A stretch of 64,000 nt of DNA from Mizuhopecten yessoensis (GCF_002113885.1 NW_018408633.1:71249-135248), one strand, 5' to 3'; positions 24,985-61,922 are shown, counted from the first letter of the stretch. Notes: generated by a model from the sequence alone, not told the origin. Made by a program: numbers and translations.

Positions 24985-25534
24985 CTGGAAAAAACCCCGA
25001 TTACATGTATGTAGTGTAGATATAAGCATTTAATCTCTGGTACGGATTTAATTTTATACATGATTATACGGTAAACATCACATTGTTTTTAATGTTGTGC
25101 TGGTTTAAGAACACTCCTTTACTAAACCATATAAGAATGTCTACATCATCGAGAATATAAAACTAGTGATCAAACAGTTTTAGAGTTGATGATGAATTTA
25201 TTTGTTTGCCTTTTTAACTAGTCATGTATATATTTTTGTTTATCTATCAATCTGTTATTTTATTTTTTTATTGTTTTTCTGAAATCAGCGTGTTTGTTGT
25301 TTAGAGTGCGTGCTCTTGTTTAATTTTTAAAGTGCATGCTTTTTTTTTTGGTGTTTGATGTGCGTGTTCCTTGTTGGATGTTTACCATGCGTGTTTGGTG
25401 TTTACAGAGTGCATTCACGGTTTGGTGTTGATAGTGCTGGTTCACCTTTTGATGTTTAACCTGCATGTTTGTTGTTTGGTTTTGGCAGTGCGTGTTCACT
25501 ATATTGTGTTTATAGCGTGTGATGTTTGTTAGAT

Positions 25535-28500
25535 ATTTACTGAATGACGGACAGTATAGACATTGAAATGATAGGTCTATTCCGTGATACTTACGTCCTC
25601 TTCCTACTGTCTGATATTTACTGAATGACGAACAATAGAGACAATGAAATGATGTGTTTATTCAGTGAAACTTTCGTCCTCTTCCTACTGTCTGATATCT
25701 ACTGAATGACGAACAAGATAGACAATGAAATGATAGGTCAATTCAGTGAAACTTACGGCCTCTTCCTACTGTCCGATATTTACTGAATGACAGACAATAT
25801 AGACAATGATATGATAGGTCTATTCACTGAAACTTACGTCCTCTCCCTACTGTCTGATATCTACTGAATGACGAACAAGATAGACAATGAAATGATTGGT
25901 CTATTCAGTGAATCTTACGTCCTCTTCCTACTGTCAGATATTTACTGAATGAGGGACAATATAGTCAATGAAATGATAGGGATATTCAGTGAAACTTTCG
26001 TCCTCTTCCTACTCTCTGATATTTACTGAATGACGGACAATATGGACAATGAAATGATAAGTCTATTCAGTGAAACTCACGTCCTCTTCCTACTGCCTGA
26101 TATTTACTGAATGACGGTCAATATAGACATTGAAATGATAGGTCTGTTCAGTGATACTTACGTCATCTTCCTACTGTCTGTTGCGTCCTCTTCCTACTGC
26201 CTGATATTTACTGAATGACGAGAAATATAAACAATGAAATGATAGGACTATTCGGTGAAACTTACGTCCCCTTCCTACTGTCTGATATTTACTGAGTGAC
26301 GGACAATATAGACATTGAAATGATAGGTCTATTCGGTGATACTTACGTCCTCTTCCTACTGTCTGATATTTACTGAATGACGGACAATATAGACAGTGAA
26401 ATGATAGGTCTATTCAGTGAAACTTACGTACTCTTCCTACTGTCTGATATTTACTGAATGACGGACAATATAGACATTGAAATGATAGGTCTATTCGGTG
26501 ATACTTATGTCCTCTTCCTACTGTCTGATATTTACTGAATGGTGGACAATATAGACAGTGAAATGATAGGTCTATTCAGTGATACTTACGTCCTCTTCCT
26601 ACTGTCTGATAATTACTGAATGACGGACAATATAGACAGTGAAATGATAGGTCTATTAAGTGATACTTACGACCTCGTCCTACTGTCTGATAATTACTGA
26701 ATGACGGACAATATAGACAGTGAAATGATAGGTCTATTCAGTGATACTTACGTCCTCTTCCTTCTGTCTGATATTTACTGAATGACGGACAATATAGACA
26801 ATGAAATGCTAGGTCTATTCAGTGAAACTTACGTCCTCTTCCTACTGCCTGATATTTACTGAATGGTGGACAATGTAGACAGTAAAATGAAAGGTCTATT
26901 CAGTGATACTTACGTCCTCGTCCTACTGTCTGATATTTACTGAATGGGGGACAATGTAGACAGTAAAATGATAGGTCTATTCAGTGATGCTTACGTCCTC
27001 TTCCTACTGTCTGATATTTACTGAATGGTGGACAATGTAGACAGTAAAATGATAGGTCTATTCAGTGATACTTACGTCCTCTTCCTACTGTCTGATATTT
27101 ACAGAATGACGAACACTATAGACAGTGAAATGATAGGTCTATTCAGTGATACTCACGTCCTCTTTCTACTGTTTGATATTTACTGAATGACGGACAATAT
27201 AGACAGTGAAATGATAGGTCTATTCAGTGATACTTACGTCCTCTTCCTACTGTCTGATATTTACTGAATGACGGACAATATAGACAGTGAAATGATAGGT
27301 CTATTCAGTGATACTTACGTCCTCTTCCTACTGTCTGATATTTACTGAATGACGGACAATATAGACAGTGAAATGATAGGTCTATTCAGTGATACTTACG
27401 TCCTCTTCCTACTGTCTGATATTTACTGAATGACGGACAATATAGACAGTGAAATGATAGGTCTATTCAGTGATACTTACGTCCTCTTCCTACTGTCTGA
27501 TATTTACTGAATGACGGACAATATAGACAGTGAAATGATAGGTCTATTCAGTGATACTTACGTCCTCTTCCTACTGTCTGATATTTACTGAATGACGGAC
27601 AATATAGACAGTGAAATGATAGGTCTATTCAGTGATACTTACGTCCTCTTCCTACTGTCTGATATTTACTGAATGACGGACAATATAGACAGTGAAATGA
27701 TAGGTCTATTCAGTGATACTTACGTCCTCTTCCTACTGTCTGATATTTACTGAATGACGGACAATATAGACAGTGAAATGATAGGTCTATTCAGTGATAC
27801 TTACGTCCTCTTCCTACTGTCTGATATTTACTGAATGACGGACAATATAGACAGTGAAATGATAGGTCTATTCAGTGATACTTACGTCCTCTTCCTACTG
27901 TCTGATATTTACTGAATGACGGACAATATAGACAGTGAAATGATAGGTCTATTCAGTGATACTTACGTCCTCTTCCTACTGTCTGATATTTACTGAATGA
28001 CGGACAATATAGACAGTGAAATGATAGGTCTATTCAGTGATACTTACGTCCTCTTCCTACTGTCTGATATTTACTGAATGACGGACAATATAGACAGTGA
28101 AATGATAGGTCTATTCAGTGATACTTACGTCCTCTTCCTACTGTCTGATATTTACTGAATGACGGACAATATAGACAGTGAAATGATAGGTCTATTCAGT
28201 GATACTTACGTCCTCTTCCTACTGTCTGATATTTACTGAATGACGGACAATATAGACAGTGAAATGATAGGTCTATTCAGTGATACTTACGTCCTCTTCC
28301 TACTGTCTGATATTTACTGAATGACGGACAATATAGACAGTGAAATGATAGGTCTATTCAGTGATACTTACGTCCTCTGCCTACTCTCTGATATTTACTG
28401 AATGGTGGACAATATAGACAGTGAAATGATAGGTCTATTCAGTGATACTTACGTCCTCTTCCTACTGTCTGATATTTACTGAATGACGGACAATATAGAC

Positions 28501-28637
28501 CATGAAATGATAGGTCTATTCAGTGATACTTACGTCCTCGTCCTACTGTCTGATATTTACTGAATGGTGGCCTTTATAGACAGTGAAATGATAGGTATAT
28601 TCGAATTCAGTGATACTTACGTCCTCTTTCTACTGTC
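25535..28637. repeat. 81-bp intronic tandem repeat, ~38 copies, each carrying a copy of the exon-2 3' end and splice donor
   Basis: Period 81 (tactgaatg at 27181 and 27262). On the minus strand each unit contains ACAGTAGGAAGAGGAC|gtaagtatcac, like the real junction ACAGTAGAAAGAGGAC|gtaagtatcac at 28621/28620. Confidence 0.95.
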
Positions 28638-29164: not shown

Positions 29165-30480
29165 AGATATATCGGTCAATAGGCATGTTACATTAAGTAC
29201 ACCAGTCAATAGGCATGGTTACACTCTGTACATCGGTCAACAGACCTTGTTACAGTGTGTACATCGGTCAACAGACCTGGTTACAGTGTGTACATCGGTC
29301 AACAGACCTTGTTACAGTGTGTGCATCGGTCAACAGACCTTGTTACAGTATGTACATCGGTCAACAGACCTGGTTACAGTGTGTACATCGGTTAACAGAC
29401 CTTGTTACAGTGTGTACATCGGTCAACAGACCTGGTTACAGTGTGTACATCGGTCAACAGACATTGTTACAGTGTGTGCATCGGTCAACAGACCTGGTTA
29501 CAGTGTGTACATCGGTCAACAGACCTTGTTACAGTGTGTACATCGATCAACAGACCTTGTTACAGTGTGTATATCGGTCAACAGACCTTGTTACAGTGTG
29601 TGCATCGGTCAACAGACCTTGTTACAGTATGTACATCGGCCAACAGACCTGGCTAAAGTGTGTACATCGGTCAACAGACCTTGTTACAGTATGTACATCG
29701 GTCAACAGACCTGGTCACAGTGTGTACATCGGTTAACAGACCTTGTTACAGTGTGTACATCGATCAACAGACCTTGTTACAGTGTGTATATCGGTCAACA
29801 GACCTTGTTACAGTGTGTGCATCGGTCAACAGACCTTGTTACAGTGTGTACATCGGTCAATAAGCATGTTACAGTATGTACATCGGCCAACAGACCTGGT
29901 TAAAGAGTGTACATCGGTCAACAGACCTTGTTACAGAGTGTACATCGGTCAACAGACCTTGTTACAGTATGTACATCGGCCAACAGACCTGGCTAAAGTG
30001 TGTACATCGGTCAACAGACCTTGTTACAGTGTGTGCATCGGTCAACAGACCTTGTTACAGTGTGTACATCTGTCAATAGGCATGTTACAGTGTGTACATC
30101 GGTCAACATACCTTGTTACAGTGGGTACATCGGTTAACAGACCTTGTTACAGTGTGTACATCGGTCAATAAGCATGTTACAGTATGTACATCGGCCAACA
30201 GACCTGGTTAAAGTGTGTACATCGGTCAACAGACCTTGTTACAGTGTGTACGTCGGTCAACAGACCTTGTTACTGAGTGTACATCGGTCAACAGACCTTG
30301 TTACAGAGTGTACATCGGTCAACAGACCTTGTTACAGAGTGTACATCGGTCAACAGACCTTGTTACAGTGTGTACATCGGTCAATAAGCATGTTACAGTA
30401 TGTACATCGGCCAACAGACCTTGTTACAGTGTGTACATCGGTTAACATACCTTGTTACAAATTGATCGGTTAACAGACAT
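29165..30480. repeat. 31-bp minisatellite, ~42 copies, in intron 1 of the EF-hand gene
   Basis: Unit acatcggtcaacagaccttgttacagtgtgt; period 31. Confidence 0.95.
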
Positions 30481-33144
30481 TCGTTACATGCACTTTCATG
30501 TACAGTCTGTACCATATTCTCTGGAGACCAAGTTTCATTACATTGTTTATTAGCTTCGTGGTATTTAATTACATTTCACAAGTAGGATCATATCTTATTT
30601 GACGATAGTATTTCTGATAATTTAAACACGATACTTCTAAAGTAACAGTGCTTGGAGCAACGTCGTCGGCAATAAAAGGACAATCTTAAAGCTAATTATC
30701 ATTTGCTATTACATTTGTATACTATATATATATATATATATAAAATACTTTCACGATTATTTACCGACATTTTGTATCGGATCAGTTAAATAAAATTAAT
30801 ATGGAACACATCAAAGAAGGCATGTATCTAAGAAAGGTGGGAATGGTAGTAAAATACGACCATCACGTTAGGTGTGTTGGTGCAGTTCTGTGCACGTAAA
30901 AGACCGATGATTCAGCAATATACCTGTTATTTTGGATACACAATTTTGGAGAATGTGCCATAAGTAACAAACAGTTTGGCGGTGTTTCAAAGTCTTCAGG
31001 TGAGTGCGTTTGATTTTTGATATCGGTTACCGATCAGGGTGCGTATATATATGCGCGCACAATGAATAGCAAAACGGCCAGTTGTAGAATGAGAACCGGA
31101 TTGGCAGGTAATGCGCTTTTTATACCCAGCGAGACACATACTCGCTTCCAAGCAAGGACAAACTAAAATGTCGGCACTTCCTTGGAAACTATAGTCGGAA
31201 GAGACGGGGAAGATTTCAAAACCAGATTTTTAAATTTATTTTTTAATCTCAATTGAAAGCTTTTTAACTTGCACTGTCAGCTTTAAGTGGCATGGATTTA
31301 AAGATATTTGAATTATTAATTTGATTATTCATTTATATATTTAATGGTATCTATCGCCTATACGTTTAAACTGACATGGACTGTACAAATCCTGATTACT
31401 TTTATTCTGAGATCGTGTGCTGAGGATTTATATTTATTTTAAACTTCGGTTATTAGTTTTAACTTTATTTATTGCCATTATATTGTAGTAATGCAAATAA
31501 CATACATAATACAAGGATTGGAAAGCTTTTTCGGTTACAGTGTATGTACACTGTACATATAATGGTCCACCCTTTATAATGTATATGGTACATTATGTTC
31601 TCGGCCGTAGTAGAGACATTTCCAAAGCATTCTAAGTAAGTAATCTGTTAGGGTTACTGACTTAAGTGAAATATGCATATTGGAAAATCCAGATATACAT
31701 GTAAGTTGGCACTTTCAAACATATGCCACTATACGCCTCAATACAATGACCCAGTGAGTTCATAAGTTCAAAAGTTTATTGGCCTTTAGCCTTTCGGCTA
31801 ATCAGCATAAACATTACAGCACATTTTACAAAATTGAATGAGTGATACACAGCAATACAGACATATTATGGAGGATGGACAACATACTTGTAATTATTCA
31901 TTTGATCTCAGTTGTGAAGCAGCAATTAAAAATTTGGAAAGATTATTCAATTTCTTCTTATTTTTGACAGAAAGTAAGTTAATGAATTTAAACATAGACG
32001 GTCTAATTCTGTAATATCTATCAATGTATTGTGTTCTTACTTGGACAAACAAGAATAAAATGCAATATGACTATATTACTGTTTTACACAGTGTATATAT
32101 ATGTATATTACACAGAGGTATACATAGTGCCCGTGTTAATAGATCAGGCGACGGCTTACCTAATTGACAGTATATATACATACATAAATGTACATAAATA
32201 CCTCACATGGCTACCGAGCAAGCCTTTAATACGCGTCACGTTCTGTTTAAAATTCCATTATTTAATAAGTGGTTCTCACTGATCAGGGAACACAATGCGC
32301 CTTGCTGGTTTACATACTGTGTCTGGACATGTACACGGCGACATAATTACCTGTCTTCATATGTAAATATAAAGTCTATTATATCGTATAGTATAAATAT
32401 GTAATCAGTAGAGGTATGACAGGTCCTAATTGAAGCACCGTTCAATATCGGACGTGGAGTAGGAAACGTCATCCACGGCTCAGGCCAAGGGGGTATTTCT
32501 TACCACATAAAAACATTCCTGGACACAACTGTAGAATCAAGCTAACCAGTCTACGTATCAGCAAGTTTTTCAAGCTGTGAAGTTATTTATGTTCGTGTTA
32601 ATCAGTAGACTATTTCAATTAGACTGTTCAGGGTTTGACTTTAACATTATTTTTCTAATAATTAACGACCTAGTTTGTACTCAAATGTACATGTATATTG
32701 CCGTTGATAATCCTCGTCCGTGTCTCAATCTTGCTAAGGCCAACATCCACTCCCCTCCATTTATTTTCGTCTACACTACTGTACATTGTACCGACGTGGC
32801 CCATCTCTCTACTCCCAAGCCCGACCCCACCCCTACATATTCCCACCCCTACATATCCCCACCCTCACTGGTCCCACCCCGACCCCTCCTTATTTTTTAA
32901 ATCCACTAGTCCCAGCCCGTCCTTCCCGCTCTCATCTGCCTCCTACCCTCCTCAATGTCCCCGGCCTCTGTGGCCAGCTACACCACTACTTCTCCTCCTA
33001 CACTAGAACACCTGTATATGACCAAACACAATGTATATTGTTATTGATAACTTGTCACCTTCCATATCTTAAATATGTCCAGTTCCTCTCGTTTCCCTCG
33101 TCAGCATTCACAAACAATCCGGCATATATACAGTATATACTTAC

Positions 33145-33519
33145 GGCAACTTGGAAAGATGTCCCCTTAAATCCAACCTTGACCACTGCGTCTCTGAACT
33201 GGTGGACAGTTATCTGACCAATACCGGACGTGTCAGCTTCCTTAAAGAAATTTAAATAGGATTGTCTGAGTTTAGGAGAGACTGGATTGGAAGTGTCTAC
33301 GTCTGCCCGCTGTGTATCCTTTAGACGTGTTCCTACGTCTTCTGTTCTAACTGGGTCCATATCTTCAGTTGACTGTTTTAATTTCTTTTCCGAGTCCATG
33401 ACTACATCAGGAGGTTGAGCACTGTCTTGCCCGGGGGTTATGTTCTCCTCCCCCGGGGGTTTACGGGTACTCCCTATTGATATTTGGCATGTGTATCTCT
33501 GCTGACGTGAAGTCGGCAT
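33145..33519 (-). CDS. Calmodulin-like EF-hand protein, exon 1 (long N-terminal extension plus EF1); spliced product 227 aa
   Basis: ATG at 33519; 125 codons ending ...LRQSYLNFFKEADTSGIGQITVHQFRDAVVKVGFKGTSFQVA, then donor gtaagt at 33144. Confidence 0.88.
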
Positions 33520-35795: not shown

Positions 35796-35859
35796 ATGGC
35801 TAGAATTATTGTAATAATCATTATCCTGACAACTTATCTCTCATGCGTCCAATCTCAAG
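35796..35859 (+). CDS. Exon 1 of the repeat/aKG-HExxH gene: secretory signal peptide
   Basis: MARIIVIIIILTTYLSCVQSQ-G|gtaagt: basic N-terminus, hydrophobic core, V-Q-S cleavage motif. The phase-1 donor joins in frame to the acceptor at 37513. Confidence 0.85.
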
Positions 35860-37513
35860 GTAAGTGTACAGTTTGTAGTAATTTAACCTGTTATCACCGT
35901 AATTGTGTTGTAGCAAACGCAACACTAATGTTTTTAAGGCAGTATGCGAATGACAAAAACAAAACAAAACCGATTGAAGACATTTATATCAAATATTTTT
36001 AGCATGTATATTTTAAAGCAAATGTATTTTTGATAAGCGTAAATGAAGAAGTGTCTAAGATTCAAATCGTGTTTTAATAATTTTTGTAATAAGCATTGTC
36101 ATTTAGTTACATGTAGATCGCTCTGTCGCATTGTTATACCAAACTTTCCAATTATATTACGTTGTCTTTATGCATAGCTTCTTGTCTACATAACACTAGC
36201 CGATTTGTTTCTTTGGTAGATAACACTGTCACTTGGGACGAGCTTCGGTTAGTAATTCGGGAAAAAGAACTACAACGAATTGATTACAATTTCAAATATT
36301 TATTAACAATTATATAAAATCCTAAATATTTAGGGCGCACTCACTCACTTTCTCACTCTAGTCTATCCATTATATAGTACATAAGTCTGTAGCACACATC
36401 CACTAAACTGGCCTCCAGTGAACAATTTCACAAAAAATCCTACGATAAATTTTACTCGTAAGAGAAATTTTTGTTCCGTTTCACAAAAAATTATCGTAAC
36501 TTTACGATAGCTTTACCCCTCTCTTAAGTGGTAATTTGTATCGTAAATGTAAATAAATCTAAAGATTTTAATCGTAATTTCAAATAAACAAGGCTGCTAC
36601 GATTGGTTTGAAAACGAATTAAAGAGCGATGTATCGTGAAAAGGTTTTTCGAGACAGATTTAACCACTGCACCTAAGCCATGCCCTATTTCTAACAAAAC
36701 CATATAGATGTTCCATAAGGGGCCGTGTTAGTTTTAAGCACACAACGACAATTTGAATTGCATTTTTAATAGATGAATAGTAAGTATGTTTGGTTTGACC
36801 GTCCTTGATGTTTAAATCTGATCAGTATGTTGCGAAAATCACACACGAACTATTCCTCAATCAGGAAATCTCAGTATCATATACTTAGTACACGTACTTA
36901 AAACTTACACAGCATATAGCCTCACGTTAGTAGGCCTACAGGCAAATTCGTCATATGTGCTAATCATAATATGTATGAGTAAAAAAATAGCATGTGTTAC
37001 AAAATAATTCATGTGGTACAATGTAGTAACAGCGTAGACTACGTACTTATTAATACAGCATGTCTATTCTTTCCCCGCACGTGAACAGACAACGTATTAT
37101 GTAAGGTAAAACATTGAATAAAACACGTGAATCCGTTACGACGTAAGACTTATTTCTGTATACTAAGCACTTTGAGAAGTTGAGAATAATACGTATTTGA
37201 ACAAGACATAGTTCGTGACAGTTTTACCTTAAAAACATTTCATGCACACATGGGTGAGAGCCGAGAGGGCGCCGCTTGTCTATAAAATTCGTGACTTCGG
37301 TTAAGTTCTGTATTTTCAATTTCGTATAGAAAAAACTGAAATACTTAGTTTTGAGTATTGTCCAGGCACAAGTAATAACTGTATCAACGTAATCTCTGTG
37401 AAATATTTGCTGCCTTTTCCGAAATCGTAACGATGCTGTCTGTAAAATCTCCAAACGAAAGTTATATCCATCTCGGGGTACTAATATGTTATCATTTATT
37501 TGTTATTTTTCAG

Positions 37514-40500
37514 GTAGTTTCAAAAACGTTCAGAGGTTAAGTAAACTTATCAAAGTTGCAAGAAGCTACATAGGAGTAAACTGGCCCAGTAATGATCTGC
37601 ATGTAAAAGTGAGTAACTTGCAAACGCATGACACCTTTGGAGCTGATTTAACTAACAACTTAAATGCTGAAGCAAACAGTTTGCAGACTCGGGACGCAGA
37701 TGATGCTGATTTTAGTGAAGATCCGAAGGTTAGAGTAACCAGGTTGCAGACTCGGGATGCAGATGATGCTGATTTCAGTGAAGATCCAAAGGTCAGAGTA
37801 ACCAGGTTGCAGTCTCGGGACGCTGATGATGCTGATTTCAGTGAAGATCCGAAGGTTAAAGTTACCAGGTTGCAGACTCGGGATGCAGATGATGCTGATT
37901 TCAGTGAAGATCCTAAGGTTAGAGTAACCAGGTTGCAGACTCGGGACACTGATGATGCTGATTTCAGTGAAAATCCGAAGGTTAAAGTTACCAGGTTGCA
38001 GACTCGGGACGCAGATGATGCTGATTTTAGCGAAGATCCGAAGGTTAGAGGAACCAGGTTGCAGACTCGGGACGCTGATGATGCTGATTTCAGTGAATAT
38101 CCTAAGGTTAGAGTAACCAGGTTGCAGACTCGGGACACTGATGATGTTGCAGACTCGGGATGCAGATGATGCTGATTTTAGCGAAGATCCGAAGGTTAGA
38201 GTAACCAGGTTGCAGACTCGGGAGGCAGTTGCTGCTGATTTCAGTAAAGATCCGAAGGTTAGAGTAACCAGGTAGATGATGCTGATTTTAGCGAAGATCC
38301 GAAGGTTAGAGGAACCAGGTTGCAGACTCGGGACGCTGATGATGCTGATTTCAGTGAAGATCCTAAGGTTAGAGTAACCAGGTTGCAGACTCGGGACACT
38401 GATGATGCTGATTTCAGTGAAAATCCGAAGGTTAGAGTAACCAGGTTGCAGACTCGGGAGGCAGATGCTGCTGATTTCAGTAAAGATCCGAAGGTTAGAG
38501 TAACCAGGTAGATGATGCTGATTTTAGCGAAGATCCGAAGGTTAGAGTAACCAGGTTGCAGACTCGGGACACTGATGATGCTGATTTCAGTGAAAATCCG
38601 AAGGTTACAGTAACCAGGTTGCAGTCTCGGGACGCTGATGATGCTGATTTCAGTGAATATCCTGAGGTTAGAGTAACCAGGTTGCAGACTCGGGACGCTG
38701 ATGATGCTGATTTCAGTGAAAATCCGAAGGTTAGAGGAACCAGGTTGCAGACTCGGGACGCTGATGATGCTGATTTCAGTGAAAATCCGAAGGTTAGAGT
38801 ACCAGGTTGCAGACTCGGGACGCAGATGATGCTGATTTCAGTGAAGATAAGAAGGTTAGAGTAACTAGGATGCAGACCCGGGAGGCAAATGATGCTGATT
38901 TTAGCGAAGATATGATGATGATTTCAGTGAAGATCCTAAGGTTAGGGTAACCAGGTTGCAGACTCGGGTTGCAGATGATGCTGATTTCAGTGAAGATCCT
39001 AAGGTTAGGGTAACCAGGTTGCAGACTCGGGTTGCAGATGATGCTGATTTCAGTGAAAATCCGAAGGTTAGAGTAACCAGGTTGCAGACTCGGGACGCAG
39101 ATGATGCTGATTTCAGTGAAAATCCGAAGGTTAGAGTACCAGGTTGCAGACTCGGGACGCAGATGATGCTGATTTTAGCGAAGATCCGAAGGTTAGAGTA
39201 ACCAGGTTGCAGACTCGGGATGCCGATGATGCTGATTTCAGTGAAAATCCGAAGGTTAGAGTAACTAGGTTGCAGACTCGGGAGGCAGATGATTCTGATT
39301 TCAGTGAAGAACCGAACGTTAGAGTAACCAGGTTGCAGACTCGGGACGCAGATGCTGCTGATTTCAGTGAAGATCCGATGGTTAGAGTAACCAGGTTGCA
39401 GACTCGGGACGCAGATGATGCTGATTTCAGTGAAGATCCGAACGTTCGAGTCACCAGGTTGCAGACTCGGGACGCAGATGATGATGCTGATTTCAGTGAA
39501 GATCCGAACGTTAGAGTAACCAGGTTGCAGACTCGGGACACTGATGATGCTGATTTCAGTGAAGATCCTAAGGTTAGAGTAACCAGGTTGCAGACTCGGA
39601 ACGCTGATGATGCTGATTTCAGTGAAGATCCGAAGGTTAGAGTGACCAGGTTGCAGACCCGGGAGGCAGATGATGCTGATTTTAGCGAAGATCCGTATGT
39701 TAGAGTAACCAGGTCGCAGACTCGGGACGCAAATGATGCTGATTTTAGCGAAGATCCGTATGTTAGAGTAACCAGGTCGCAGACTCGGGACGCAAATGAT
39801 GCTGATTTCAGTGTAGATCCTAAGGTTAGAGTAACCAGGTTGCAGACTCGGGACGCAGATGAAGCTGATTTCAGTGAAGATCCGAAGGTAAGAGTAACCA
39901 GGTTGCAGACTCGGGATGCGGATGATGCTGATTTCAGTGAAGATCCTAAGGTTAGAGTAACCAGGTTGCAGACTCGGGACACTGATGATGCTGATTTCAG
40001 TGAAAATCCGAAGGTTAGAGTAACCAGGTTGCAGACTCGGGAGGCAGATGCTGCTGATTTCAGTAAAGATCCGAAGGTTAGAGTAACCAGGTTGGTAACC
40101 AGGTTGCAGTCTCGGGACGCTGATGATGCTGATTTCAGTGAAGATCCTAAGGTTAGAGTAACCAGGTTGCAGACTCGGGACACTGATGATGCTGATTTCA
40201 GTGAAAATCCGAAGGTTAGAGTAACCAGGTTGCAGACTCGGGATGCCGATGATGCTATTTTCAGTGAAGATCCGAAGGTTAGAGTAACCAGGTTGCAGAC
40301 TCGGGAGGCAGATGCTGCTGATTTCAGTAAAGATCCGAAGGTTAGAGTAACCAGGTTGCAGTTTCGGGACGCAGATGATGCTGATTTCAGTGAAGATCCG
40401 AACGTTCGAGTCACCAGGTTGCAGACTCGGGACGCAGATGATGCTGATTTCATTGAAGATCCGAACGTTGGAGTAACCAGGTTGCAGACTCGGGACACTG

Positions 40501-43095
40501 ATGATACTGATTTCAGTGAAGATCCGAAGGTTAGAGTAACCAGGTTGCAGACTCGGGACGCAGATGATGCTGATTTCATTGAAGATCCGAACGTTGGAGT
40601 AACCAGGTTGCAGACTCGGGACACTGGTGATACTGATTTCAGTGAAGATCCGAAGGTTAGAGTAACCAGGTTGCAGACTCGGGACGCAGAGGATACTGAT
40701 TTCAGTGAAGATCCAAAGGTTAGAGTAACCATGTTGCAGACTCGGGATGCAGGTGATGCTGATTTCAGTGAAGATCCTAAGGTTAGAGTAACCAGGTTGC
40801 AGACTCCGGACGCAGATGAAGCTGATTTCAGTGAAGATCCGAAGGTTAGAGTAACCAGGTTGCAGACTCCGGACGCAGATGATGCTGATTTCAGTGAAGA
40901 TCCGAAGGTTAGAGTACCCAGGTTGCAGACTCGGGACGCAGATGATGCTGATTTCAGTGAAGATAAGAAGGTTAGAGTAACTAGGTTGCAGACCCGGGAG
41001 GCAAATGATGCTGATTTTAGCGAAGATCCGAAGGTTAGAGTAACCAGGTTGCAGACTCGGGACGCAAATGATACTGATTTCAGTGAAGATCCGAAGGTAA
41101 GAGTAACCAGGTTGCAGACTCGGGATGCAGATGATGCTGATTTCAGTGAAGATCCGAACGTTCGAGTCACCAGGTTGCAGACTCGGGACGCAGATGAAGC
41201 TGATTTAACTGAAGATCCTAAGGTTAGAGTAACCAGGTTGCAGACTCGGGACGCTGATGATGCTGATTTCAGTGAAGATCCGAACGTTAGAGTCACCAGG
41301 TTGCAGACTCGGGATGCAGATGAAACTGATTTCAGTGAGGATCCGAAGGTTAGAGTAACCAGGTTGCAGACTCGGGACGCAGATCATGCTGATTTCAGTG
41401 AAGATCCGAAGGTTAGAGTCACCAGGTTGCAGTCTCGGGACGCAGATGATGCTGATTTCAGTGAAGATAAGAAGGTTAGAGTAACCAGGTTGCAGACTCG
41501 GGACGCAGATGATGCTGATTTCAGTGAAGATCCGAAGGTTAGAGTCACCAGGTTGCAGTCTCGGGACGCAGATGATGCTGATTTCAGTGAAGATCCGAAC
41601 GTTAGAGTAACCAGGTTGCAGACCCGGGAGGCAGATGATGCTGATTTTAGCGAAGATGCGAAGGTTGTAGTAACCAGGTTGCAAACTCGGGACGTAGATG
41701 TAGCTGATTTCAGTGAAGATTCGAAGGGTAGAGTAACCAGGTTTCAGATTCGGGACGCTGATGACTTTGTTTATGATAGAGATCCAAATGTTGAAGCAAA
41801 CAGGTTACAGATTCGAGACGCTGACTATGTTGATATTAGTAAAGATCCCAATAACAAAACAACAAAGAAAACAATAAAAGCTGCTCATAAAGCTGGATTT
41901 AGTGACCTTTCAAACCGAAATATCTCTGAAAAACTTTTTATGACGGCCATGAACGCCGAGCAGTCAAGAGAAAATGGAAATCATCAAGATGTAAAAGAAG
42001 CTTCTTACAACGGGATGTGTTTATTCCAAAGGAAATCGTTTTATGATGACTTTCAAGATACTGTAGGCTGGTTGTCCGAAGTGAAAGCGGTTTCAAGGCG
42101 TCATATACCAGAAAATGCGATGACATTCTTGGACTAATGGAACGAATTCTTGCCTCTGATATCGCATGTGGACAGATCAATGTCCCCTACTATGAAAACG
42201 CTCTCAATCAAATCTTCCCTTCATGGTATGAGCTTAACAAACGCGTTTGTAAATGCATTTTGGCCATTTAATCATAAGATCTCAAGATTTAACCAACTGT
42301 TAGGGTTAACGGTGTTCTCTTCTACGTCTAAAGAAGAAGCGACGAAGGTAGCGTTCTTTAAGCATTTATCACATTACCAGATGATTGAAATTCCAGTCGA
42401 GGAACACAAGGTAGTCTACAGTTTCGATGACCCTGCGCTTGTTGACGGTCTCAATAGGTCAACGTTAGTTGACTTTAGTGAAGAATACGTCACAGCTGGC
42501 AACCACACCTTCAGTGGGGAAGAACAGGAACAAATTATAAAAAATGTGGATGAAGCATTTGGATTGATTCAACAAGTATCACCTGGTTTACACAAGGCCA
42601 TAGTACAGTTAGTCGGCTGCATTGCGTTTTACAAGGCAGAGACACGATATTATGCGGGTGGAACAGTCAGTTCTGCTCTTGGCGTCATATGGATGGATCC
42701 CAGTGCTAGAAAAAGAATGGGTTGTTCCCTTTTACGCAGAACAAATAGTTCATGAATTCATACACACGTCTCTCTTCTACGCTGAACTTGTTCATGGAAC
42801 GTACACGGACCATGCTAACCTGAAAAAGGCTCAGGTGAAATCCTCAATTCGACGACAGCTAAGGGATTATGACAAAGCCTTCCATGCCGCCTACGTCTCA
42901 ACTGGTCTGGTGACCTTCCACACAAGGGCGGGATATATGAAGCGCGCTACACAACTAGCTATGAACTTACGTTCCAGCATTGACGATTTGGAGAAAGTTG
43001 GCATGGAAACACGAATCCTAAACGAGTCTGGAGTGGCAATGTTGCAATCTTTAGTTGATATGTTGGAAATGACTCGAATTGAACGCATGGAATAA
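37514..43095 (+). CDS. Exon 2: ~60-65 tandem 21-aa acidic repeats fused to a C-terminal aKG-HExxH-type peptide-modifying (beta-hydroxylase-like) domain; frame disrupted in this copy
   Basis: Acceptor ttatttttcag|GT AGT TTC continues the exon-1 frame. ORFs 37486, 38320, 38556, 38956 and 39144 encode the same repeat. ORF 42150 is in frame with ORF 39144 behind one TAA (42135), and ORF 42622 joins it via a one-base shift in an A5 run (42710-42714). Stop at 43093; AATAAA at 43137. Confidence 0.8.
37681..41760 (+). repeat. 63-bp coding tandem repeat (LQTRDADDADFSEDPKVRVTR), ~60-65 copies
   Basis: Unit ttgcagactcgggacgcagatgatgctgatttcagtgaagatccgaaggttagagtaaccagg. Diverged in-frame copies occur at both edges. 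Confidence 0.97.
42272..43095 (+). CDS. aKG-HExxH family domain (HEXXH-motif peptide modification protein, putative Fe/2-oxoglutarate beta-hydroxylase)
   Basis: ...AFGLIQQVSPGLHKAIVQLV...GGTVSSALGVIWMDP...EWVVPFYAEQIVHEFIHTSLF (HEFIH at 42751-42765)...VKSSIRRQLRDYDKAFHAAYV (third His at 42883). Motif order and spacing match bacterial HExxH RiPP-modifying proteins. Recognised by eye, not by database search. Confidence 0.78.
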
Positions 43096-43450
43096 ACGGA
43101 TTTAAAGTTGTGTGCATTTTTAACTCGGTTCCTGTCAATAAAATACACAGAAGGGTTGTAGTATGACGAAACTGTGTTATTTGAGAAAAGGTATTAACTT
43201 CATCTTATACGTATCAATCGTATATTTTTGCTGAGGTAAATATGAGGTTATGTTGACCTGATTAAGCGATTATGACCTCCAATTTGTCACGGTCAATATT
43301 ACTGTTCAGATGCACGTAACCACATATTCAACAGAACAACATCCTTGATTCAAACATCAGATGGAATATATTATTAAAATAAAATTCATTATACTGAATG
43401 TACATCTGTAGCAGAGTGCACTGTAAAGTTACAATTATAAATGTGCCTTA

Positions 43451-44539
43451 GGTTCCACAGGTCCCCTAAAAGATGTAATAGTCACCCTAAATTTCAGCCC
43501 CCCGGCAAGTCATATTAAAAAAACGGAATATATATATATGTAATTTAATATATTGAACTTGTACATGATATATCAAAAAGGTACTTAACCAAGTTAACGA
43601 AGTCAAAATACGGCATTAAGGCTGATATAATGATAAACGTTGCTAACAAGATTTATAAAATGTCAATCTCTTAAGCGACCCAACTGAATGTTACGAAGTG
43701 ACTTGTTATTTGAAGATCATTTATAAACCTAGGTCATGCGGGGCTGTATCTCTCTTTAACCATGGGGGAGATGTATAGCGGCCTCACAAGAAAATGATTG
43801 TTGCTATAGGAAAGTACAAAAATCATAGTAAAACGTCCGCGTAACAAATTTTACCGGTATAAACGTGTAAAACCATAGACCTTTGACCATAAACACTACT
43901 TAAACTTCATATAAATGCCCTTTGTTAACATTCAATGTTTTTATAAAAGAGCTAGAAGTGTTACATGTATAAGCATTATTGTACTTTTCAGCTTCAACTT
44001 TTAAACATGTCTAGCGCATTCCTATAATCAAAGAATATTATCAAATGGCAGATCATTTAAAGTTCATTTATCTATCAATGTTATTTAGCCTTTGTTTTCT
44101 TATTTATAAATTGCTAGAAAGCATTACCAGGCGATTTTACTATGATTCTATTGGTTTCGTATTGCAACATCAATCTTTATTTGAGGTCGGAATTCCTCTA
44201 AACAGCTAGTAGAAGAGAAATAGAGCTCCACATGACCTGGAATATAAATAAACTTTAAATTATGGGTCATTTCTCAGCACTGAGTTGAATCGTAAAAGAA
44301 ATTGACATGTTTTTTAAGTCCAGTGATATATTTTTATGAAGACATAAGCCTTAATGCCTTATTTTTGACTACGTTAACCTGGCTATGTATTTTGTGTATA
44401 GCCAATGTACAAGTTTAATATATACAAATAAAAGTGTTACATATATAAGTTCCGATTTTTAATTGAGGTCTTTGAACACTTTTTATCAGAGGGTTGACAT
44501 TTTAGGTGACTACAGAATCTTTTAGGGGCTTGTTGAACC
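43451..44539. mobile_element. MITE with long (~200 bp) imperfect TIRs and TTAA-like flanks (Kolobok-like)
   Basis: ggttccacaggtcccctaaaaga...aacttgtaca...ggcattaaggct is mirrored by agccttaatgcc...tgtacaagtt...tcttttaggggcttgttgaacc|ttaa. Confidence 0.65.
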
Positions 44540-44769
44540 TTAATAAAGATGCGTCTAAATAAATAACATCGAGACAACATCAAAAATCGACAACCTTCAC
44601 GTGATCTTATTCTGACCAATCAGAATGTAGATCATTCTATATGGAAAGCAGATCAATACAAACAAGATCAACACATCAATGTGCAAGAAAGAGTAGGTAG
44701 TTATATAGATTATTTTCAGTTTATCAGTATACAAGTCTGATACATGATTTTCAGTTTTAGAGTCTTCAT

Positions 44770-46637
44770 GGTCAGTGCTTGTCAATATACAGACATACGG
44801 TCCTTGTCAATGTGTATCAATATATAGACATACGGTCCTTGTCAGTGTTTATCAATATATAGAAATACGGTCCTGGTCAGTGTTTATCAATGTATAGACA
44901 CACGGTCCTTGTCAGTGTTTATCAATATATAGACATACGGTCCTGGTCAGTGTGTATCAATATATAGACATACGGACCTTGTCAGTGTGTATAAATATAT
45001 AGACATACGGTCCTGGGCAGTGTTTATTAATATATAGACATACGGTCCTGGTCAGTGTGTATCAATATATAGACATACGGTCCTGGGCAGTGTTTATTAA
45101 TATCTAGACATACGGTCCTGGTCAGTGTTTATCAATATATAGACATACGGTCCTGGGCAGTGTTTATTAATATATAGACATACGGTCCTGGTCAGTGTTT
45201 ATCAATATATAGACATACGGTCCTGGTCAGTGTTTATCAATATATAGACATACGGTCCTGGTCAATGTTTATAAATATATAGACATACGGTCCTGGTCAG
45301 TGTTTATTAGTATATAGACATACAGTCCTTGTCAGTGTTTATCAATATATAGACATACGGTCCTGGTCAGTGTTTATCAATATAAAGACATACGGTCCTG
45401 GTCAGTGTTTACCAATATATAGACATAAGGTCCTGGTCAATGTTTATAAATATCTAGACATACGGTCCTGGTCAGTGTTCACCTGTATCAATATATAGAC
45501 ATACGGTTCTGGTCAGTGTTTACCTGTATCAATATATAGACATACGGCCCTGGTCAGTGTTTATCAATATATAGTCATACGGTCCTCGTAAGTGTTTATC
45601 AATATATAGACATAAGGTCCTGGTCAATGTTTATAAATATCTAGACATACGGTCCTGGTCAGTGTTTATGAATATATAGACATACGGTCCTGGTCAGTGT
45701 TTATCAATATATAGACAGCCGGTCCTTGTCAGTGTTTTTCAATATATAGACATACGGTCCTGGTCAGTGTTTATCAATATATAGACTGGTCAGTGTTTAT
45801 CAACATATAGACATACGGTCCCTGTCAGTGTTTATCAATATCTAGACATACGGTCCTGGGCAGTGTTTATCAATATATAGTCAGCCGGTCCTTGTCAGTG
45901 TTTTTCAATATATAGACATACGGGGGGGGTCAGTGTTTATCAATGTATAGACATACGGTCCTCGTCAATTGATATACGGTCCTGGTCAGTTTTTATCAAT
46001 ATATAGATATACGTTCCTGGTCAGTGTTTATAAATATATAGACATACGGTCCTGGTCAGTGTTTATCAATATATAGATATACGGTCCTGGTCAGTGTTTA
46101 TCAATATATAGACACACGGTCCTGGTCAGTGTTTATCAATATATAGACATACGGTCCTTGTCTAGACACACGGTCCTGGTCAGTGTTTATCAATATAGAG
46201 ACATATGGTCCTGGTCAGTGTTTATGAATATAAAGACATGCGGTCCTTGTCAGTGTTTATGAATACTGGTCAGTGTTTATCAATATATAGACATAAGGTA
46301 CTTGTCAGTGTTTATCTATAGACATACGGTACTTGTCAATGTGTATCAATATATAGACATACGTTCCTTGTCAGTGTTTATCAATATATAGGCATACGGT
46401 CCTGGTCAGTGTTTATCAATATATAGACATAAGGTCCTTGTCAGTGTTTATCTATAGACATACGGTCCTTGTCAATGTGTATCAATATATAGACATACGG
46501 TCCTTGTCAGTGTTTATCAATATATAGACATACGGTCCTGGTTAATGTTCACATGTATCAATATATAGACAGAGGGACCTGGTCAGTGTTTATCAATTTA
46601 TAGACATACGGTCCTGGGCAGTGTTTATCAATATATA
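44770..46637. repeat. 35-bp minisatellite (family B), left block
   Basis: Unit gtcagtgtttatcaatatatagacatacggtcctg. Confidence 0.95.
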
Positions 46638-47304
46638 TTTACATTTGGTGTGGCAAAGCCCTTCTTTATTACTACTAAAGTACTGCCAATAGCAGCTTCA
46701 TCTTATGAGACTATAACTGAAGTTGGTCTTTGCACCTCCGAGCGACTTAACAGTGTCACTACCGAACTTATCGGTATCTCCTGCTTTGATCCCTAACACC
46801 AGCTGCCTGTCTCAAGTGTCTGTGTGATCAACAAACAATTTTACGCCTGGATTTTTCACCAATTCAACCTTCTCCGGTTGCACGATCAACATCAACAACA
46901 TGCCGGACCGCAAATAGTACTCTGACCTGATTACTGCGGGCTTCCGTTGAGTGCGTGCGCCGGATATAGGTCGCAATAAAATCGGAAAATGTTTTACGAC
47001 ACTTGATTAGTTACTTACAAAATGTCATTTGTTACTATTTATGAATCGAGAATATGATATATATATAAATCAAAATCAAATGAATTATTAACGAAAGTTG
47101 CGGAGTATTTTCAATTTTGTATGGGAAATAGCGCATGACGTCAGCTGTTTTCTTTGTGCCGTTCTAGATACTGACCTGACCTGACAGTAATAAGAGGGAA
47201 ATTTGAAATTTGGAAAAGACATATTTTTTTTGGGCGAATTCTCATTATGGAAATATAAATATAAGCAATAAACTGCATAGATGTGGCAGTTATACCAGTA
47301 TGCC

Positions 47305-48255
47305 TGTATCAATATATAGACATATGGTCCTGGCCAGTGTTTATCAATATATAGACATAAGGTCCTGGTCAGTGTTTATCCATATATAGACATACGGTCC
47401 TGGTCAGTGTTTACTTGTATCAATGTCTCGACATACGGTCCTGGTCAGTGTTTACTTGTATCAATGTCTCGACATACGGTCCTGGTCAGTGTTTACCTGT
47501 ATCAGTATATAGACATACGGTCCTGGTCAGTGTTTATCACTATAATTACATAAGGTCCTGGTCAGTGTTTATCCATATATAGACATACGGTCCTGGTCAA
47601 TGTTTATCAATATATAGACATATTGTCCTGGTTAGTTTTTATCAATATATAGACATACGGTCCTGGTCAGTGTTTATCAATATATAGACATATTGTCCTG
47701 GTTAGTTTTTATCAATATATAGATATACGGTCCTGGTCAGTGTTTATCAATATATAGACATACGGTCCTTGTCAGTGTTTATGAATATATAGACATATGG
47801 TCCTGGTCAGTGTTTATCAATATATAGACATACGGTCTGGTCAGTGTTTATCAATATATAGACATATGGTTCTGGTTAGTTTTTATCAATATATTGTCCT
47901 GGTCAGTGTTTATCAATATATAGACATATGGTCCTGGTCAGTGTTTATGAATATATAGACATACGGTCCTTGTCAGTGTTTATGAATATATAGACATACG
48001 GTCCTCGTCAGTGTTTATGAATATATAGACATATTGTCCTGGTCAGTGTTTATCAATATATTGTCCTGGTCAGTGTTTATCAATATATAGACATATGGTC
48101 CTGGTCAGTGTTTATGAATATAAAGACATGCGGTCCTTGTCAGTGTTTATGAATATATAGACATATGGTCCTGGTCAGTGTTTATCAATATATAGACAGA
48201 GGGACCTGGTCAGTTTTTATGAATATATAGACATATGGTCCTGGTCAGTGTTTTT
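47305..48255. repeat. 35-bp minisatellite (family B), right block
   Basis: The same unit resumes after a ~670-bp unique insertion. Confidence 0.95.
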
Positions 48256-49329: not shown

Positions 49330-50620
49330 TTTATGCTCACATATATATGCCTCTGTTGAAAACGAAGGTCTTTTCTCCACTCTTTTCCAAGTAACACGCA
49401 CAGTACGACAGGGTGATCCTTTGTTTCCATATCGTTTTGTTATTTGTATTGAATTACTAAGTGCAACAATAAAATATTACCCTGATGTCAAGGGCACAAT
49501 TTTAAATAATTCTGAATATCTTATAAGCCAGTACGCAGATGACTCAATATTGATGTTTGATGATGATGCAAGGTCCTTAACTAAAGCATTATATGTGATC
49601 GAGAACTGTGGAGAATGTTCTGGTCTAAAAACCAATTTTGATAAGTCATACGCTGTATGGATTGGGATAAAACGGGGCTGCGGGGAAGATATTGAAACGG
49701 AGCATATTTTATCCTGGAATTATTAAGGGAAATTTAAGCTTTTAGGGGTAAGATATGATTTATCTAAAGATGATATTTATAAATATAATTTTATAGAAAC
49801 ATTTAAGTCACTAGAGTCACTTCTCTCAGATTGGTGTTTTAGGAATATTTCTATCATTGGGAGAGTGAATTTTATCAAAACATTAGTATTTCCTATTATT
49901 GTACAAATACTAACTGTCATTCTTAGTCCACATGTTAAGATCCTAAAATTCAATTTTTTTTTTTTTTTTTTTCATTTTTTGTGGAATAGTAAAGTTGATA
50001 AACTCAAAAGGAATCTTTAAATTGGTGATATTAAAGATGGAGGTTTGAAAGTTCCGGATATTTTTTCTTATAGTAAATCATTAAAACTAATATGAATAAA
50101 GAAATGTTTGGATCCAAGTTATCATGCTGATTGGAAAAAACTTAAGTGATGATATAAAGCATGTAAGAGGAGATTAAATATGGAGCTTAACAAAAACATG
50201 GACTAGAGGAAATAGTTAAAAAGGTATAATTTTAGGAAATTTTGGAAGGAAATTATGTCTATTTGGGGAATCTTTACGCACTTTTCCCAACAGCCCCAGA
50301 AAACGTTCTCTCTTGGCCTCTATGGTTTAATAAAGAAATAAAAGTTAATAAAAAAAACTATCTTCTACAAAAATCTGTGTAATGAAGGCATCTTTTATGT
50401 TAAAGACGTGGTAGATGATCACGGAGATAGTATGTCTTTGAATAGCCTTATTAAGAAATACCGAGTAAATATCAATTTCATGAACTATAATGGTATTATT
50501 AGTGCCATACCAAGAGGCTGGAAGAGAATGAACACCAATTATGGGGAAAATATTGAAAATTTTCTACATAATAATTTGAGGTAACTGAAAAATATTGAAA
50601 ACCGTCTAAGTATTTCTATC
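49330..50620 (+). mobile_element. Degenerate L1/Tx1-clade LINE reverse transcriptase fragment
   Basis: VRQGDPLFPYRFVICIELL...ISQYADDS...SGLKTNFDKS, followed by stop-containing downstream ORF2 sequence. Confidence 0.85.
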
Positions 50621-51639
50621 ATACAGATTGTATGATACTGTTCCTGGTGTATATGGTGCCTTCACTACCGTCACACACTTCCTGTTAAAATGTATCAAAA
50701 GAGAGTTGACTGCCAACCATTCGCTATAAGATGATACTGATCAGTTGGTATCTCATCCTATTTAATGTCGTCCTGTATATCGTCGTACCTGTCCGATCGG
50801 AGTTACGCAAGGCCACGTTCTCCTTACGGACCGACTGTAGAAACAGGATCCTTCTCCCACAGAACACAGCAGCGGTAATAGATATCACGTCCAAAACTGG
50901 AGTGTTTTGTTTCTTTTCTAGACGACAACTCCTGTTTAAACGTCGAATTTCTCAAATCCTCACATTTAACGTGTAACCATGGTAACGTGACTCTGTCCGA
51001 AAGTTGTGAACCAAGCAGGGCATAAACCGAGCTGACGTTAATACTGGGCAATGTAGGTGACGGAATTGTAAAAGGATGAGTGTCTATAAGGCCCTTTTTG
51101 GGGCCCCGGTACATTCAGATTTTCACCTCCTTAATTTGTTCAAAGATGACCTACTGTATTACATGTGCAAAAACTAAGGTAAATGTTTTACCGAAAGTGG
51201 GTGTTTGGGGGTACCAAAAGGGGTAGGGTAAATCACAAATATAATTTGCTGTTTTTAAAACGATCTTAAAATCCCAAATCGTAGCATTTCTGTGATTTAA
51301 AACATGTCTAAATTGAACAGGCATATCTAAAAGAATGAAAAATAATAGAAATTAAATTGTCAATTAAAGATTGATTATATAAAACGGAGAATTAAGTCAG
51401 GGGGTAATTTTAGGTAATTTTTCTAATGAAAATTATTTTGTTTTCTCAATAATTTCCTTTCTAATTTATATTTTGGGTTGAAATTTACAACTTTACTCAT
51501 TTGAGTACACTTACATAAAATGCATATTCACTTCACACTTTCCTTTTGTTTTATACTGAGATATGGCTTCTGGACCCATCTCAAACTTGGCAGTTTCAAA
51601 TAACTCTCAATCTATAGTGAATTAAAAGGTGAAGGACAC

Positions 51640-52241
51640 CCTGCAGCATGAATCTGGATTTCCTCTTCAATACCGAGTTCCGTCTTGATGAATTCCTCGG
51701 TGTCTTCATCACGGTCAACATCTGGGATTCCTCCAAATAACAGGTTGTCCTTCATCGATCGTGTTTGGATCTCGAGTATCTGATCTTTCAGTAAGTGATT
51801 TTCTTCTCGTACCTCATCCCGTTCCAGTTCCACTTTGCTGACTCTCTCTTCCAGAATGGCATGGTCGAAATCCGCACCCATAAGCTGTTCACTGTGTGTT
51901 TTAAGTTCACGTTTAACTTCTGATAACGAGCTCTCGATACTACTAAACTTGGCCTCCATGACACTGAGTCTAGACATAATTTGATCCCGTGTATCCAGCT
52001 TAGTTAACCTTGGAAATATTTCTCGGAGAATTTGATCGCTGAAGTGTGAGGAAATGGTGTCAGGAGTGGGTGAGGTTGCCTGAGGGAACATCAACTTAGG
52101 ATTCGCAGGGGCACTAGGGAATATACACCTCTGCATAGGGTACTGCATGGCAGGTTGAAAAAAGGGTTGCGTGACGGCCACATTACCATGTGGGGTACCA
52201 TAGAGCTCGTTATACGTCCCAAGGCAAACACAACACAACAC
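51640..52241 (-). mobile_element. LINE ORF1-like fragment (coiled coil plus start of L1-type RRM)
   Basis: Coiled coil RLSVMEAKFSSIESSLSEVKRELK...LEERVSKVELE, followed by QTRSMKDNLLFGGIP and EEFIKTELGI. Truncated. Confidence 0.75.
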
Positions 52242-60012: not shown

Positions 60013-60514
60013 GTAAGGTATCTTTATGATCACATACAGAGTTACAACATTTATGGTATAGCTCTGTTGTAATATTGATAGGATTGGATATTACTTGTTT
60101 TTAGTAATTTTGTCCAAAAAAAAAAAAAAAAAGCATTGAAATAATATTTAGCTCGATACATGGAACTAGCGATATCATCATATTTTCTTTAATAGTCATC
60201 CCACAACGAGAAGACTTTTATATCACTTCTTATTATATATATATATATACTTATTCAGTGCAATGCTGTTACGTGTATATCTATTTTACTTCGTTATTAG
60301 TGTAATGTGAGAATAACAGCAGTTAAGATAACAGTTGTATTTTTTCTGTATCTATAATATACGTTTTTAAGTCTGTTTTTGTTTTGTTAGTGGTTGGTTC
60401 TGTGTGTGTTATATAAGTATTTCTCCCTATTAAACAATGTTAGTTTTACTTCAGTTGTTTACTTTTTTTATTCTATATTTGTAATATAATTTGTTTTCCA
60501 TGTATAACTGATTA

Positions 60515-61892
60515 CTGCAGTTGTTCGTGTGAGTTGTCAGTGTGATAACTCGCCCGCTGTCACCGATGTACCACTGTACTACACAGCCTGTAACCCATGC
60601 CAATATCTCTGTTGACTGTATGCTGTAGTTGTTCGTGTGAGTTGTCAGTGTGATAACTCGCCCGTTGTCTCCCGTGTACCACTGTACTACACAGCCAGTA
60701 TCCCCTGCCAATGCCTCTGTTGTCTGTATGTTGTAGTTGTTCGTATGAGGTGTCAGTGTGATAACTCGCCCGTTGTCACCCCTGTACCACTGTACTACAC
60801 ACCCAGTATCACCTGACACTGCCTCTGTTGACTGTATGTTGTAGTTGTTCGTGTGAGTTGTCAGTGTGATAACTCGCCCGCTATCACCGATGTACCACTG
60901 TACTACACAGCCTGTAACCCATGCCAATATCTCTATTGACTGTATGCTGTAGTTGTTCGTGTGAGTTGTCAGTGTGATACCTCGCCCGTTGTCACCCCTG
61001 TACCACTGTACTACAAAGCCAGTATCACCTGACACTGCCTCTGTTGTCTGTATGTTGTAGTTGTTCGTATGAGTTGTCAGTGTGATAACTCGCCCGTTGT
61101 CACCCGTGTACCACTGTACTACACAGCCAGTATCACCTGACACTGCCTCTGTTGTTTGTATGTTGTAGTTGTTCGTGTGAGTTGTAAGTATGATAACTCG
61201 CCCGTTGTCACCCGTGTACCACTGTACTTTACAGCCAGTATCACCTGACACTGCCTCTGTTGTCTGTATGTTGTAGTTGTTCATGTGAGTTGTCATTGTG
61301 ATAACTCTCCCGTTGTTACCGATGTACCACTGGACTACACAGCCAGTAACCCATGCCAATATCTCTGTTGACTGTATGCTTTAGTTGTTCGTGTGAGGTG
61401 TAAGTATGATAACTCGCCCGTTGTCACCGATGTACCACTGTACTACACAGCCAGTAACCCATGCCAATATCCATGTTGTCTGTATGTTGTAGTTGTTCAT
61501 GTGAGTTGTCATTGTGATAACTCTCCCGTTGTTACCGATGTACCACTGTACTACACAGCCAGTATCACCTGACACTGCCTCTGTTGTCTGTATGTTGTAG
61601 TTGTTCGTGTGAGTTGTAAGTGTGATAACTCGCCCGTTATCACCGATGTACCACTGTACTTCACAGCCAGTATCATCTGTATCTGCCTCTGTTGTCTGTA
61701 TGTTGTAGTTGTTCGTGTGAGTTGTAAGTGTGATAACTCGCCCGTTGTCACCCGTGTACCACTGTACTTTACAGCCAGTATCACCTGACACTGCCTCTGT
61801 TGTCCGTATGTTGTAGTTGTTCGTGTGAGTTGTCAGTGTGATAACTCGCCCTTTGTCATCCCTGTACCACTGTACGACACAGCCAGTATCAC
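60515..61892. repeat. 108-bp tandem repeat, 13 copies, each a duplicated splice acceptor plus the 5' part of the CUB exon
   Basis: ag|TTGTTC recurs every 108 bp from 60521 to 61817. Only the last copy continues into TSPGYPRNY and a donor. Confidence 0.95.
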
Positions 61893-61922
61893 TAGTCCCG
61901 GCTACCCCAGAAACTACGCTAT
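61817..61922 (+). CDS. CUB-domain protein exon (end of signal peptide, start of CUB domain)
   Basis: gttgtag|(V)VRVSCQCDNSPFVIPVPLYDTASITSPGYPRNYA-AT|gtaagt. ITSPGYPxNY is the CUB N-terminal motif. Confidence 0.85.

Follow-up and report, generated by a model that had tools for sequence, protein, structure and literature searches.

Precursor peptides fused to the enzymes that modify them have been described from fungi and plants, the plant BURP-domain fusions carrying repeated cores; RiPP-like peptides are also known from animals, where the tailoring enzymes are mostly housekeeping or unknown. The closest described enzymes to those considered here are the aKG-HExxH peptide β-hydroxylases (TIGR04267, IPR026337; ChlBH (8S5F), BpmH/BipH, PesO, PflC/PosC), a family of Fe/2-oxoglutarate enzymes that hydroxylate His, Asp, Phe, Gln or Pro residues of RiPP precursors, the HExxH motif binding the iron (PMC13060819); PflC and PosC cleave the peptide backbone oxidatively, or hydrolytically without a leader (PMC12636437). 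Animal multicore precursors that come without an enzyme have likewise been reported (PMC10945851).

The animal gene family described here shares with the aKG-HExxH enzymes their profile, HExxH motif and fold, and its bacterial relatives are likewise encoded beside a precursor peptide; the animal proteins differ in having a signal peptide and in being fused to a presumed multicore precursor, and neither a radical SAM nor an MNIO partner is encoded in the gene. Precursor and enzyme also share one polypeptide in fungal borosins and in the fused BURP-domain peptide cyclases of plants, but the enzymes and chemistry there are unrelated, whereas in the animal family a bacterial origin can be traced for both parts. 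The precursors of proline-rich macrocyclic peptides in sponges (PMC10945851) and those of neuropeptides resemble it in being animal-encoded, with a signal peptide and repeated cores; they have no fused enzyme, however, and the cores here are near-identical rather than hypervariable. Whilst the enzyme family, and precursor–enzyme fusion as a kind, are already known, the literature searched (aKG-HExxH, animal RiPP and gene identifiers; subscription journals poorly covered) contained no secreted multicore precursor–enzyme fusion from an animal whose two parts trace to a bacterial gene pair; the first-pass annotation of this DNA likewise knew of no animal example of the architecture.

The locus lies in a 64,000-nucleotide stretch of the Mizuhopecten yessoensis genome (GCF_002113885.1 NW_018408633.1:71249-135248; ‘the window’), from whose first letter all positions are counted; the gene is on the plus strand. 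An ATG at 35796 starts a 21-codon hydrophobic peptide (maximum eight-residue Kyte-Doolittle mean of 4.4), the predicted signal peptide, and exon 1 (35796–35859; 21 codons plus one base) ends at a GTAAGT donor. As the GT at 35860 follows one extra base, arithmetic on the window sequence gives a phase-1 intron (putatively 35860–37513; GT…TTTCAG), closed by a pyrimidine-rich acceptor ending at 37513 whose frame is that of the first repeats. The proposed phase-1 joining of a signal-peptide exon to a repeat exon is thus consistent with start codon, donor, acceptor and frame, and we infer such a splice for the window copy; the signal peptide of the Mercenaria orthologue is likewise interrupted by its first intron. 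The large exon described at first pass is not open throughout, the window copy having no continuous reading frame. Exons and pieces were searched separately; solely for aligning sequences and building the tree, the enzyme part was read with an X where the frame breaks.

Downstream of the acceptor, a degenerate leader-like helix (37546–37596) can be aligned to the leader found in homologues and in bacterial precursors (N-I-x-x-Y-x-x-x-H-F), its match to a bacterial leader profile (p 0.28) not being significant alone. It is followed by a first degenerate repeat unit with the core LQTHD (37615–37676; p 0.05 against a bacterial core profile) and then by the array itself (37677–41764), for which the estimate of some 60–65 tandem peptide repeats proved accurate: TRF reports 64.4 copies of 63 bp, i.e. 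∼64 repeats of 21 amino acids. In each, the core LQTRD is accompanied by an acidic stretch and by a site of the form R-x-x-R, with RVTR occurring 35 times in ∼41 units. Written as L-Q-T-[HR]-D, the window core has Leu in place of the otherwise conserved Met, and the array units match the bacterial core profile (p 0.02) through the segment VTRLQTRD. The units bear the sequence signature of past constraint: 80 of 181 changes among them (44%) are synonymous against 22% expected, these counts not being independent, and the 52 full units contain no stops. A linker with two further degenerate units, core QIRD (41765–42053), leads into the enzyme.

The animal enzyme domain begins near 42054 and spans ∼345 codons rather than the ∼270 residues first suggested, homology continuing through both the stop and the frameshift described below. 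Its N-terminal part (42054–42709) is 35–43% identical to intact animal homologues and its C-terminal part (42712–43095) 50–71% identical to ∼24 homologues; the latter scores 51 bits against TIGR04267 (E 1.6e-13; cut-off 40), a cut-off exceeded by 10/10 relatives tested, with seven animal homologues at 54–67 bits. HEFIH (42751–42765) and S-x-x-R-x-x-x-R-x-x-D-x-x-x-H (42841–42885) precede the enzyme stop codon (43093–43095) and a possible AATAAA polyadenylation signal (43137–43142), seen in the sequence only. Across the family there is almost no variation in the HExxH motif, one Ser, two Arg, one Asp and the distal His, and all are kept in the window, where the four motifs listed at first pass, GGTVSSALGVIW, HEFIH, SSIRRQLR and FHAAYV, are all present. 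Fold comparison was run on the domain of an intact Mercenaria homologue (P0002), not the broken window copy: the predicted model (pLDDT 96) superposes on ChlBH (8S5F; Foldseek E 5e-8, Z 21.4, rmsd 3.2 over 252 residues) and on SjiH (22OB; Z 18.7), but on zincins with a Z of 5.5 or less. Sequence search of the PDB with the domain returned no match, structures being reached by fold search only, and a Pfam search found none either, including no peptidase, BURP or methyltransferase domain. Although zincin metalloproteases share the HExxH motif and a distant likeness of fold, a zinc protease identity is ruled out by the Z-scores (5.5 versus 21.4 for ChlBH) and by the lack of a Pfam peptidase match; the earlier assignment to aKG-HExxH enzymes rather than zincins agrees with both the TIGR04267 score and the ChlBH-like fold predicted for the homologue.

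The window copy is a pseudogene. An in-frame TAA (42135–42137), a substitution, sits inside the conserved domain with homology on both sides, and the frame of GGTVSSALGVIW is not that of HEFIH, the break falling at a run of A between GGTVSS and HExxH (42710–42714). Within the array there are six frame-shifting lesions (38130–39140); a 16-base deletion and a 1-base deletion there are each present in two near-identical copies, as expected if the array went on turning over after the frame was lost. A frameshift in a homopolymer, the poor assembly of tandem arrays in general and a related ENA contig (L006) also frameshifted in its array could be taken as signs that assembly errors have broken a gene which the animal itself has intact, but the reads speak against this. 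In an independent sample (X12) a single gapless contig covers 41770–43490, with the same letters at the stop, the linker and its degenerate units unchanged and one difference, at 43192 in the 3′ flank; contigs of a second run (X15, presumed RNA, its type guessed) cross the frameshift without a gap, are identical there and match part of the linker. These reads refute assembly error for the two enzyme breaks. Furthermore, 14 runs from nine samples contain 148/148 sampled words, eleven of these runs possibly being the source of the assembly; the read comparison was confined to sequence outside the repeat array, where the stop is a substitution, while the array lesions themselves exist as duplicated copies. 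Bacterial contamination as the source of the stretch is ruled out by introns, chromosomes and retroelement flanks, leaving an intact gene misassembled, or a bacterial contaminant, as a very improbable account. Programmed frameshifting was also rejected: no slippery site was seen, a stop lies upstream and the array carries lesions of its own.

No read from either of two RNA runs (1.9 Gb covered per run) fell on the coding part of the window copy, and two short, low-depth contigs fall on it in X15, a run only guessed to be RNA. The loss looks recent, given the past constraint on the repeat units and an enzyme branch that is not long (0.44). At most, the copy could yield a secreted stub of ∼7 repeats without enzyme; the locus had been taken for a working gene but, with a real stop and frameshift, is instead a marker of its gene family and no working example of it.

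Around the gene, an open reading frame with an EF-hand-like segment (33055–33519, minus strand) lies head to head with it, ∼2.3 kb upstream, with no Pfam match at E 0.01. A high-copy dispersed repeat (43385–44600; X12 depth in the hundreds) starts ∼300 bases past the stop, and a reverse-transcriptase fragment (49421–49726) and a coiled-coil ORF (51612–52241) are likely LINE remnants. Satellite arrays occupy 14695–17267 (period 35), 25532–28637 (period 81), 29171–30459 (period 31) and 44769–48253 (period 35), and a 108-bp tandem repeat at 60451–61947 (minus strand) has long minus-strand open frames (36-aa unit) with only spurious-looking Pfam matches. A second copy of the gene was found neither in the window nor in the flanks of homologues.

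Beyond the window we find ∼40 animal-clade proteins, the named members coming from Mercenaria (three), Mactra, Mya (two), Pinctada, Haliotis (three), the coral Paramuricea and the rotifer Adineta, with the remainder coming from ENA, JGI or Logan; three of the latter were read on contigs that are large and poor in genes. A search of representatives returned ∼24 proteins at 50–71% identity, followed by bacterial-type proteins at 30–41%. The order signal peptide, short helix, tandem repeats, enzyme is present in four intact proteins (P0157, P0010, P0011 and P0013)—the orthologues with N-terminal repeats that the first-pass annotation had called for—and repeats and enzyme occupy one open reading frame in these and in P0165. 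Mercenaria LOC123540929 and Haliotis LOC124148694 are among the intact members. Repeat period (15–53 aa), copy number (0–64) and sequence are lineage-specific, several members having no repeats, and per-unit dibasic KR/RR sites occur in 6/14 repeat-bearing homologues; a length-limited search found no close orthologue with the window’s own repeat and linker. The Mercenaria genes have one intron in the signal peptide and another after HAAYVSTG, and the Adineta gene also has an intron, which excludes contamination as their source. Three paralogues lie on one Mercenaria chromosome, and in one paralogue (P0001, LOC128549660) Tyr replaces the conserved distal His.

In the enzyme tree, rooted at its midpoint only, all 25 of 25 animal-type rows form one clade (support 100/100, stem 0.87) nested in bacterial enzymes, with the window copy among the bivalves; the animals and the nearest bacterial rows are joined at 99/95. 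An AlkB-like 2OG-Fe(II) oxygenase (Pfam PF13532, above cut-off) is found in Adineta and in contigs grouping with Paramuricea, which follows the signal peptide and precedes the repeats or enzyme; none lies within 5 kb upstream on the Paramuricea contig itself. Contigs with this oxygenase in the same secreted protein include L001:10001-13903, L006:8196-11395 and L033:8001-10101, and such relatives are possibly two-enzyme, self-tailoring polyproteins.

Most of the nearest bacterial rows are extended at the N-terminus, where the leader helix recurs, one of them (P0025) with four repeats; precursor and enzyme share one open reading frame in P0025 and P0044, and P0044 and P0093 are further bacterial precursor–enzyme fusions. 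Fusions with four core repeats are seen at L002:1058-2308 and L003:6001-7206. Where the enzyme stands alone, a precursor gene of 36–91 aa lies directly upstream at 13 genome loci, including those of Ectobacillus, Cohnella, Laceyella, Cytobacillus, Exiguobacterium, Anoxybacillus, Priestia, Neolewinella and Blastococcus; in its product, a leader of the form N-I-x-x-[YF]-x-x-x-H-[FLY] is combined with 1–3 cores of the form P-L-x-M-[QK]-[IL]-H-[DE]. A ribosome site is seen at the precursor gene and an MFS transporter is often found downstream of the enzyme. Units of leader/core gene, aKG-HExxH enzyme and MFS transporter occur at L007:5648-8313 and L009-L030, and in the versions from Bacteroidota and Acidobacteriota the core is M-[AV]-A-R. 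This RiPP-like unit is apparently undescribed: the literature searched, in which subscription journals are poorly covered, contained no description of this leader/core type. ESM Atlas clusters of at least 50 members were bacterial only, without animal members.

A leader profile built from the bacterial precursors only matches 13/23 animal N-termini tested (p<0.05), 12 of the 13 matches being the N-I-x-x-Y helix at residues 22–70; most of the misses are proteins that are missing their N-terminus. The corresponding core profile matches PVRMKISD, AFSMKLSD, PLLMRVED, AWLMRVQD and VTRLQTRD in units from Mercenaria, from Paramuricea, from ENA proteins and from the window, with a combined p of 7e-6 over 11 units that are not fully independent. 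Repeats from Haliotis, from Mya and from two ENA proteins, a third of repeat types, are not matched. The core His is kept in most bacterial precursors and lost from most animal repeats. Our main reason for regarding the repeats as substrate is this correspondence: the small peptide encoded beside the bacterial enzyme is the unit repeated in the animal protein, which, with the repeat-bearing orthologues, lends sequence support to the self-modifying precursor–enzyme reading of the first-pass annotation. The likelier target is the core, M/L-[KQR]-[ILVT]-x-D, since it is conserved across the family and the acidic stretch is not; the Asp-rich stretch, originally proposed as target, is at best weakly supported. 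In a full-length model the core NMKIS forms a strand at raised confidence and the HIGGTV strand lengthens, a hint only of how a core might dock.

Were the enzyme instead domesticated for other secreted proteins (of shell, mucus, adhesive or defence), the repeats would be a drifting spacer or acidic matrix segment; the wide variation in their sequence, length (15–53 aa) and number (0–64), the repeat-free members and the third of repeat types without a detected core would all fit, but leader and core would not be expected to match separately encoded bacterial precursors, nor the multiplied unit to be the core-bearing one in distant lineages, and we regard this as an unlikely explanation.

We consider it probable that the locus derives from a horizontally acquired, fused RiPP precursor and enzyme that modified its own repeats, the window copy having recently been broken. 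In bacteria the small precursor is encoded ahead of the aKG-HExxH enzyme, an MFS exporter frequently comes next, and some versions are fused; a fused form would have entered animals, acquired a signal peptide and introns, and had its core multiplied into tandem repeats. Intact members would pass into the secretory pathway and ER, where animal Fe/2-oxoglutarate hydroxylases already work; there, the Fe(II)/2-oxoglutarate domain would bind each core of its own repeats with help from the leader and oxidise a core residue, most likely by β-hydroxylation. Furin-like cleavage at R-x-x-R or KR, where present, may then release many copies of the modified peptide, or the protein may be retained as a modified repeat protein.

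From the same origin, the main reaction could alternatively be backbone cleavage at the core, whether oxidative (leaving amides) or hydrolytic, the protein cutting its own repeats without a convertase. Docking of the core as a strand, at which the full-length model hints, would fit such a reaction, as zincin substrates dock in this way, and 8/14 repeat-bearing homologues have no per-unit dibasic sites. Saying this, convertase-like sites are found in the window and several homologues, and the ARMD motif of known cleavage differs from the core here; although PflC and PosC provide precedent, cleaving backbones oxidatively, and hydrolytically without leader (PMC12636437), the majority of characterised members are hydroxylases acting on His, Asp, Phe, Gln or Pro (PMC13060819), and there is perhaps one chance in several that cleavage prevails.

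Across the family, our reading of self-modification through oxidation is that molluscs, corals and rotifers hold a horizontally transferred bacterial leader/core/aKG-HExxH module, its parent pathway undescribed, which has been remade into a secreted multicore polyprotein that modifies itself and in some cases includes an AlkB-like oxygenase, making a new class of oxidised animal peptides; we judge this on balance to be so. A single animal gene encodes enzyme and presumed substrate, and both can be traced back to a pair of bacterial genes, which makes the product predictable. If true, this would be a new class of invertebrate peptide natural products and an example of an entire biosynthetic logic passing between kingdoms, and the range of an enzyme family discovered only recently would widen to include the eukaryotic secretory pathway.
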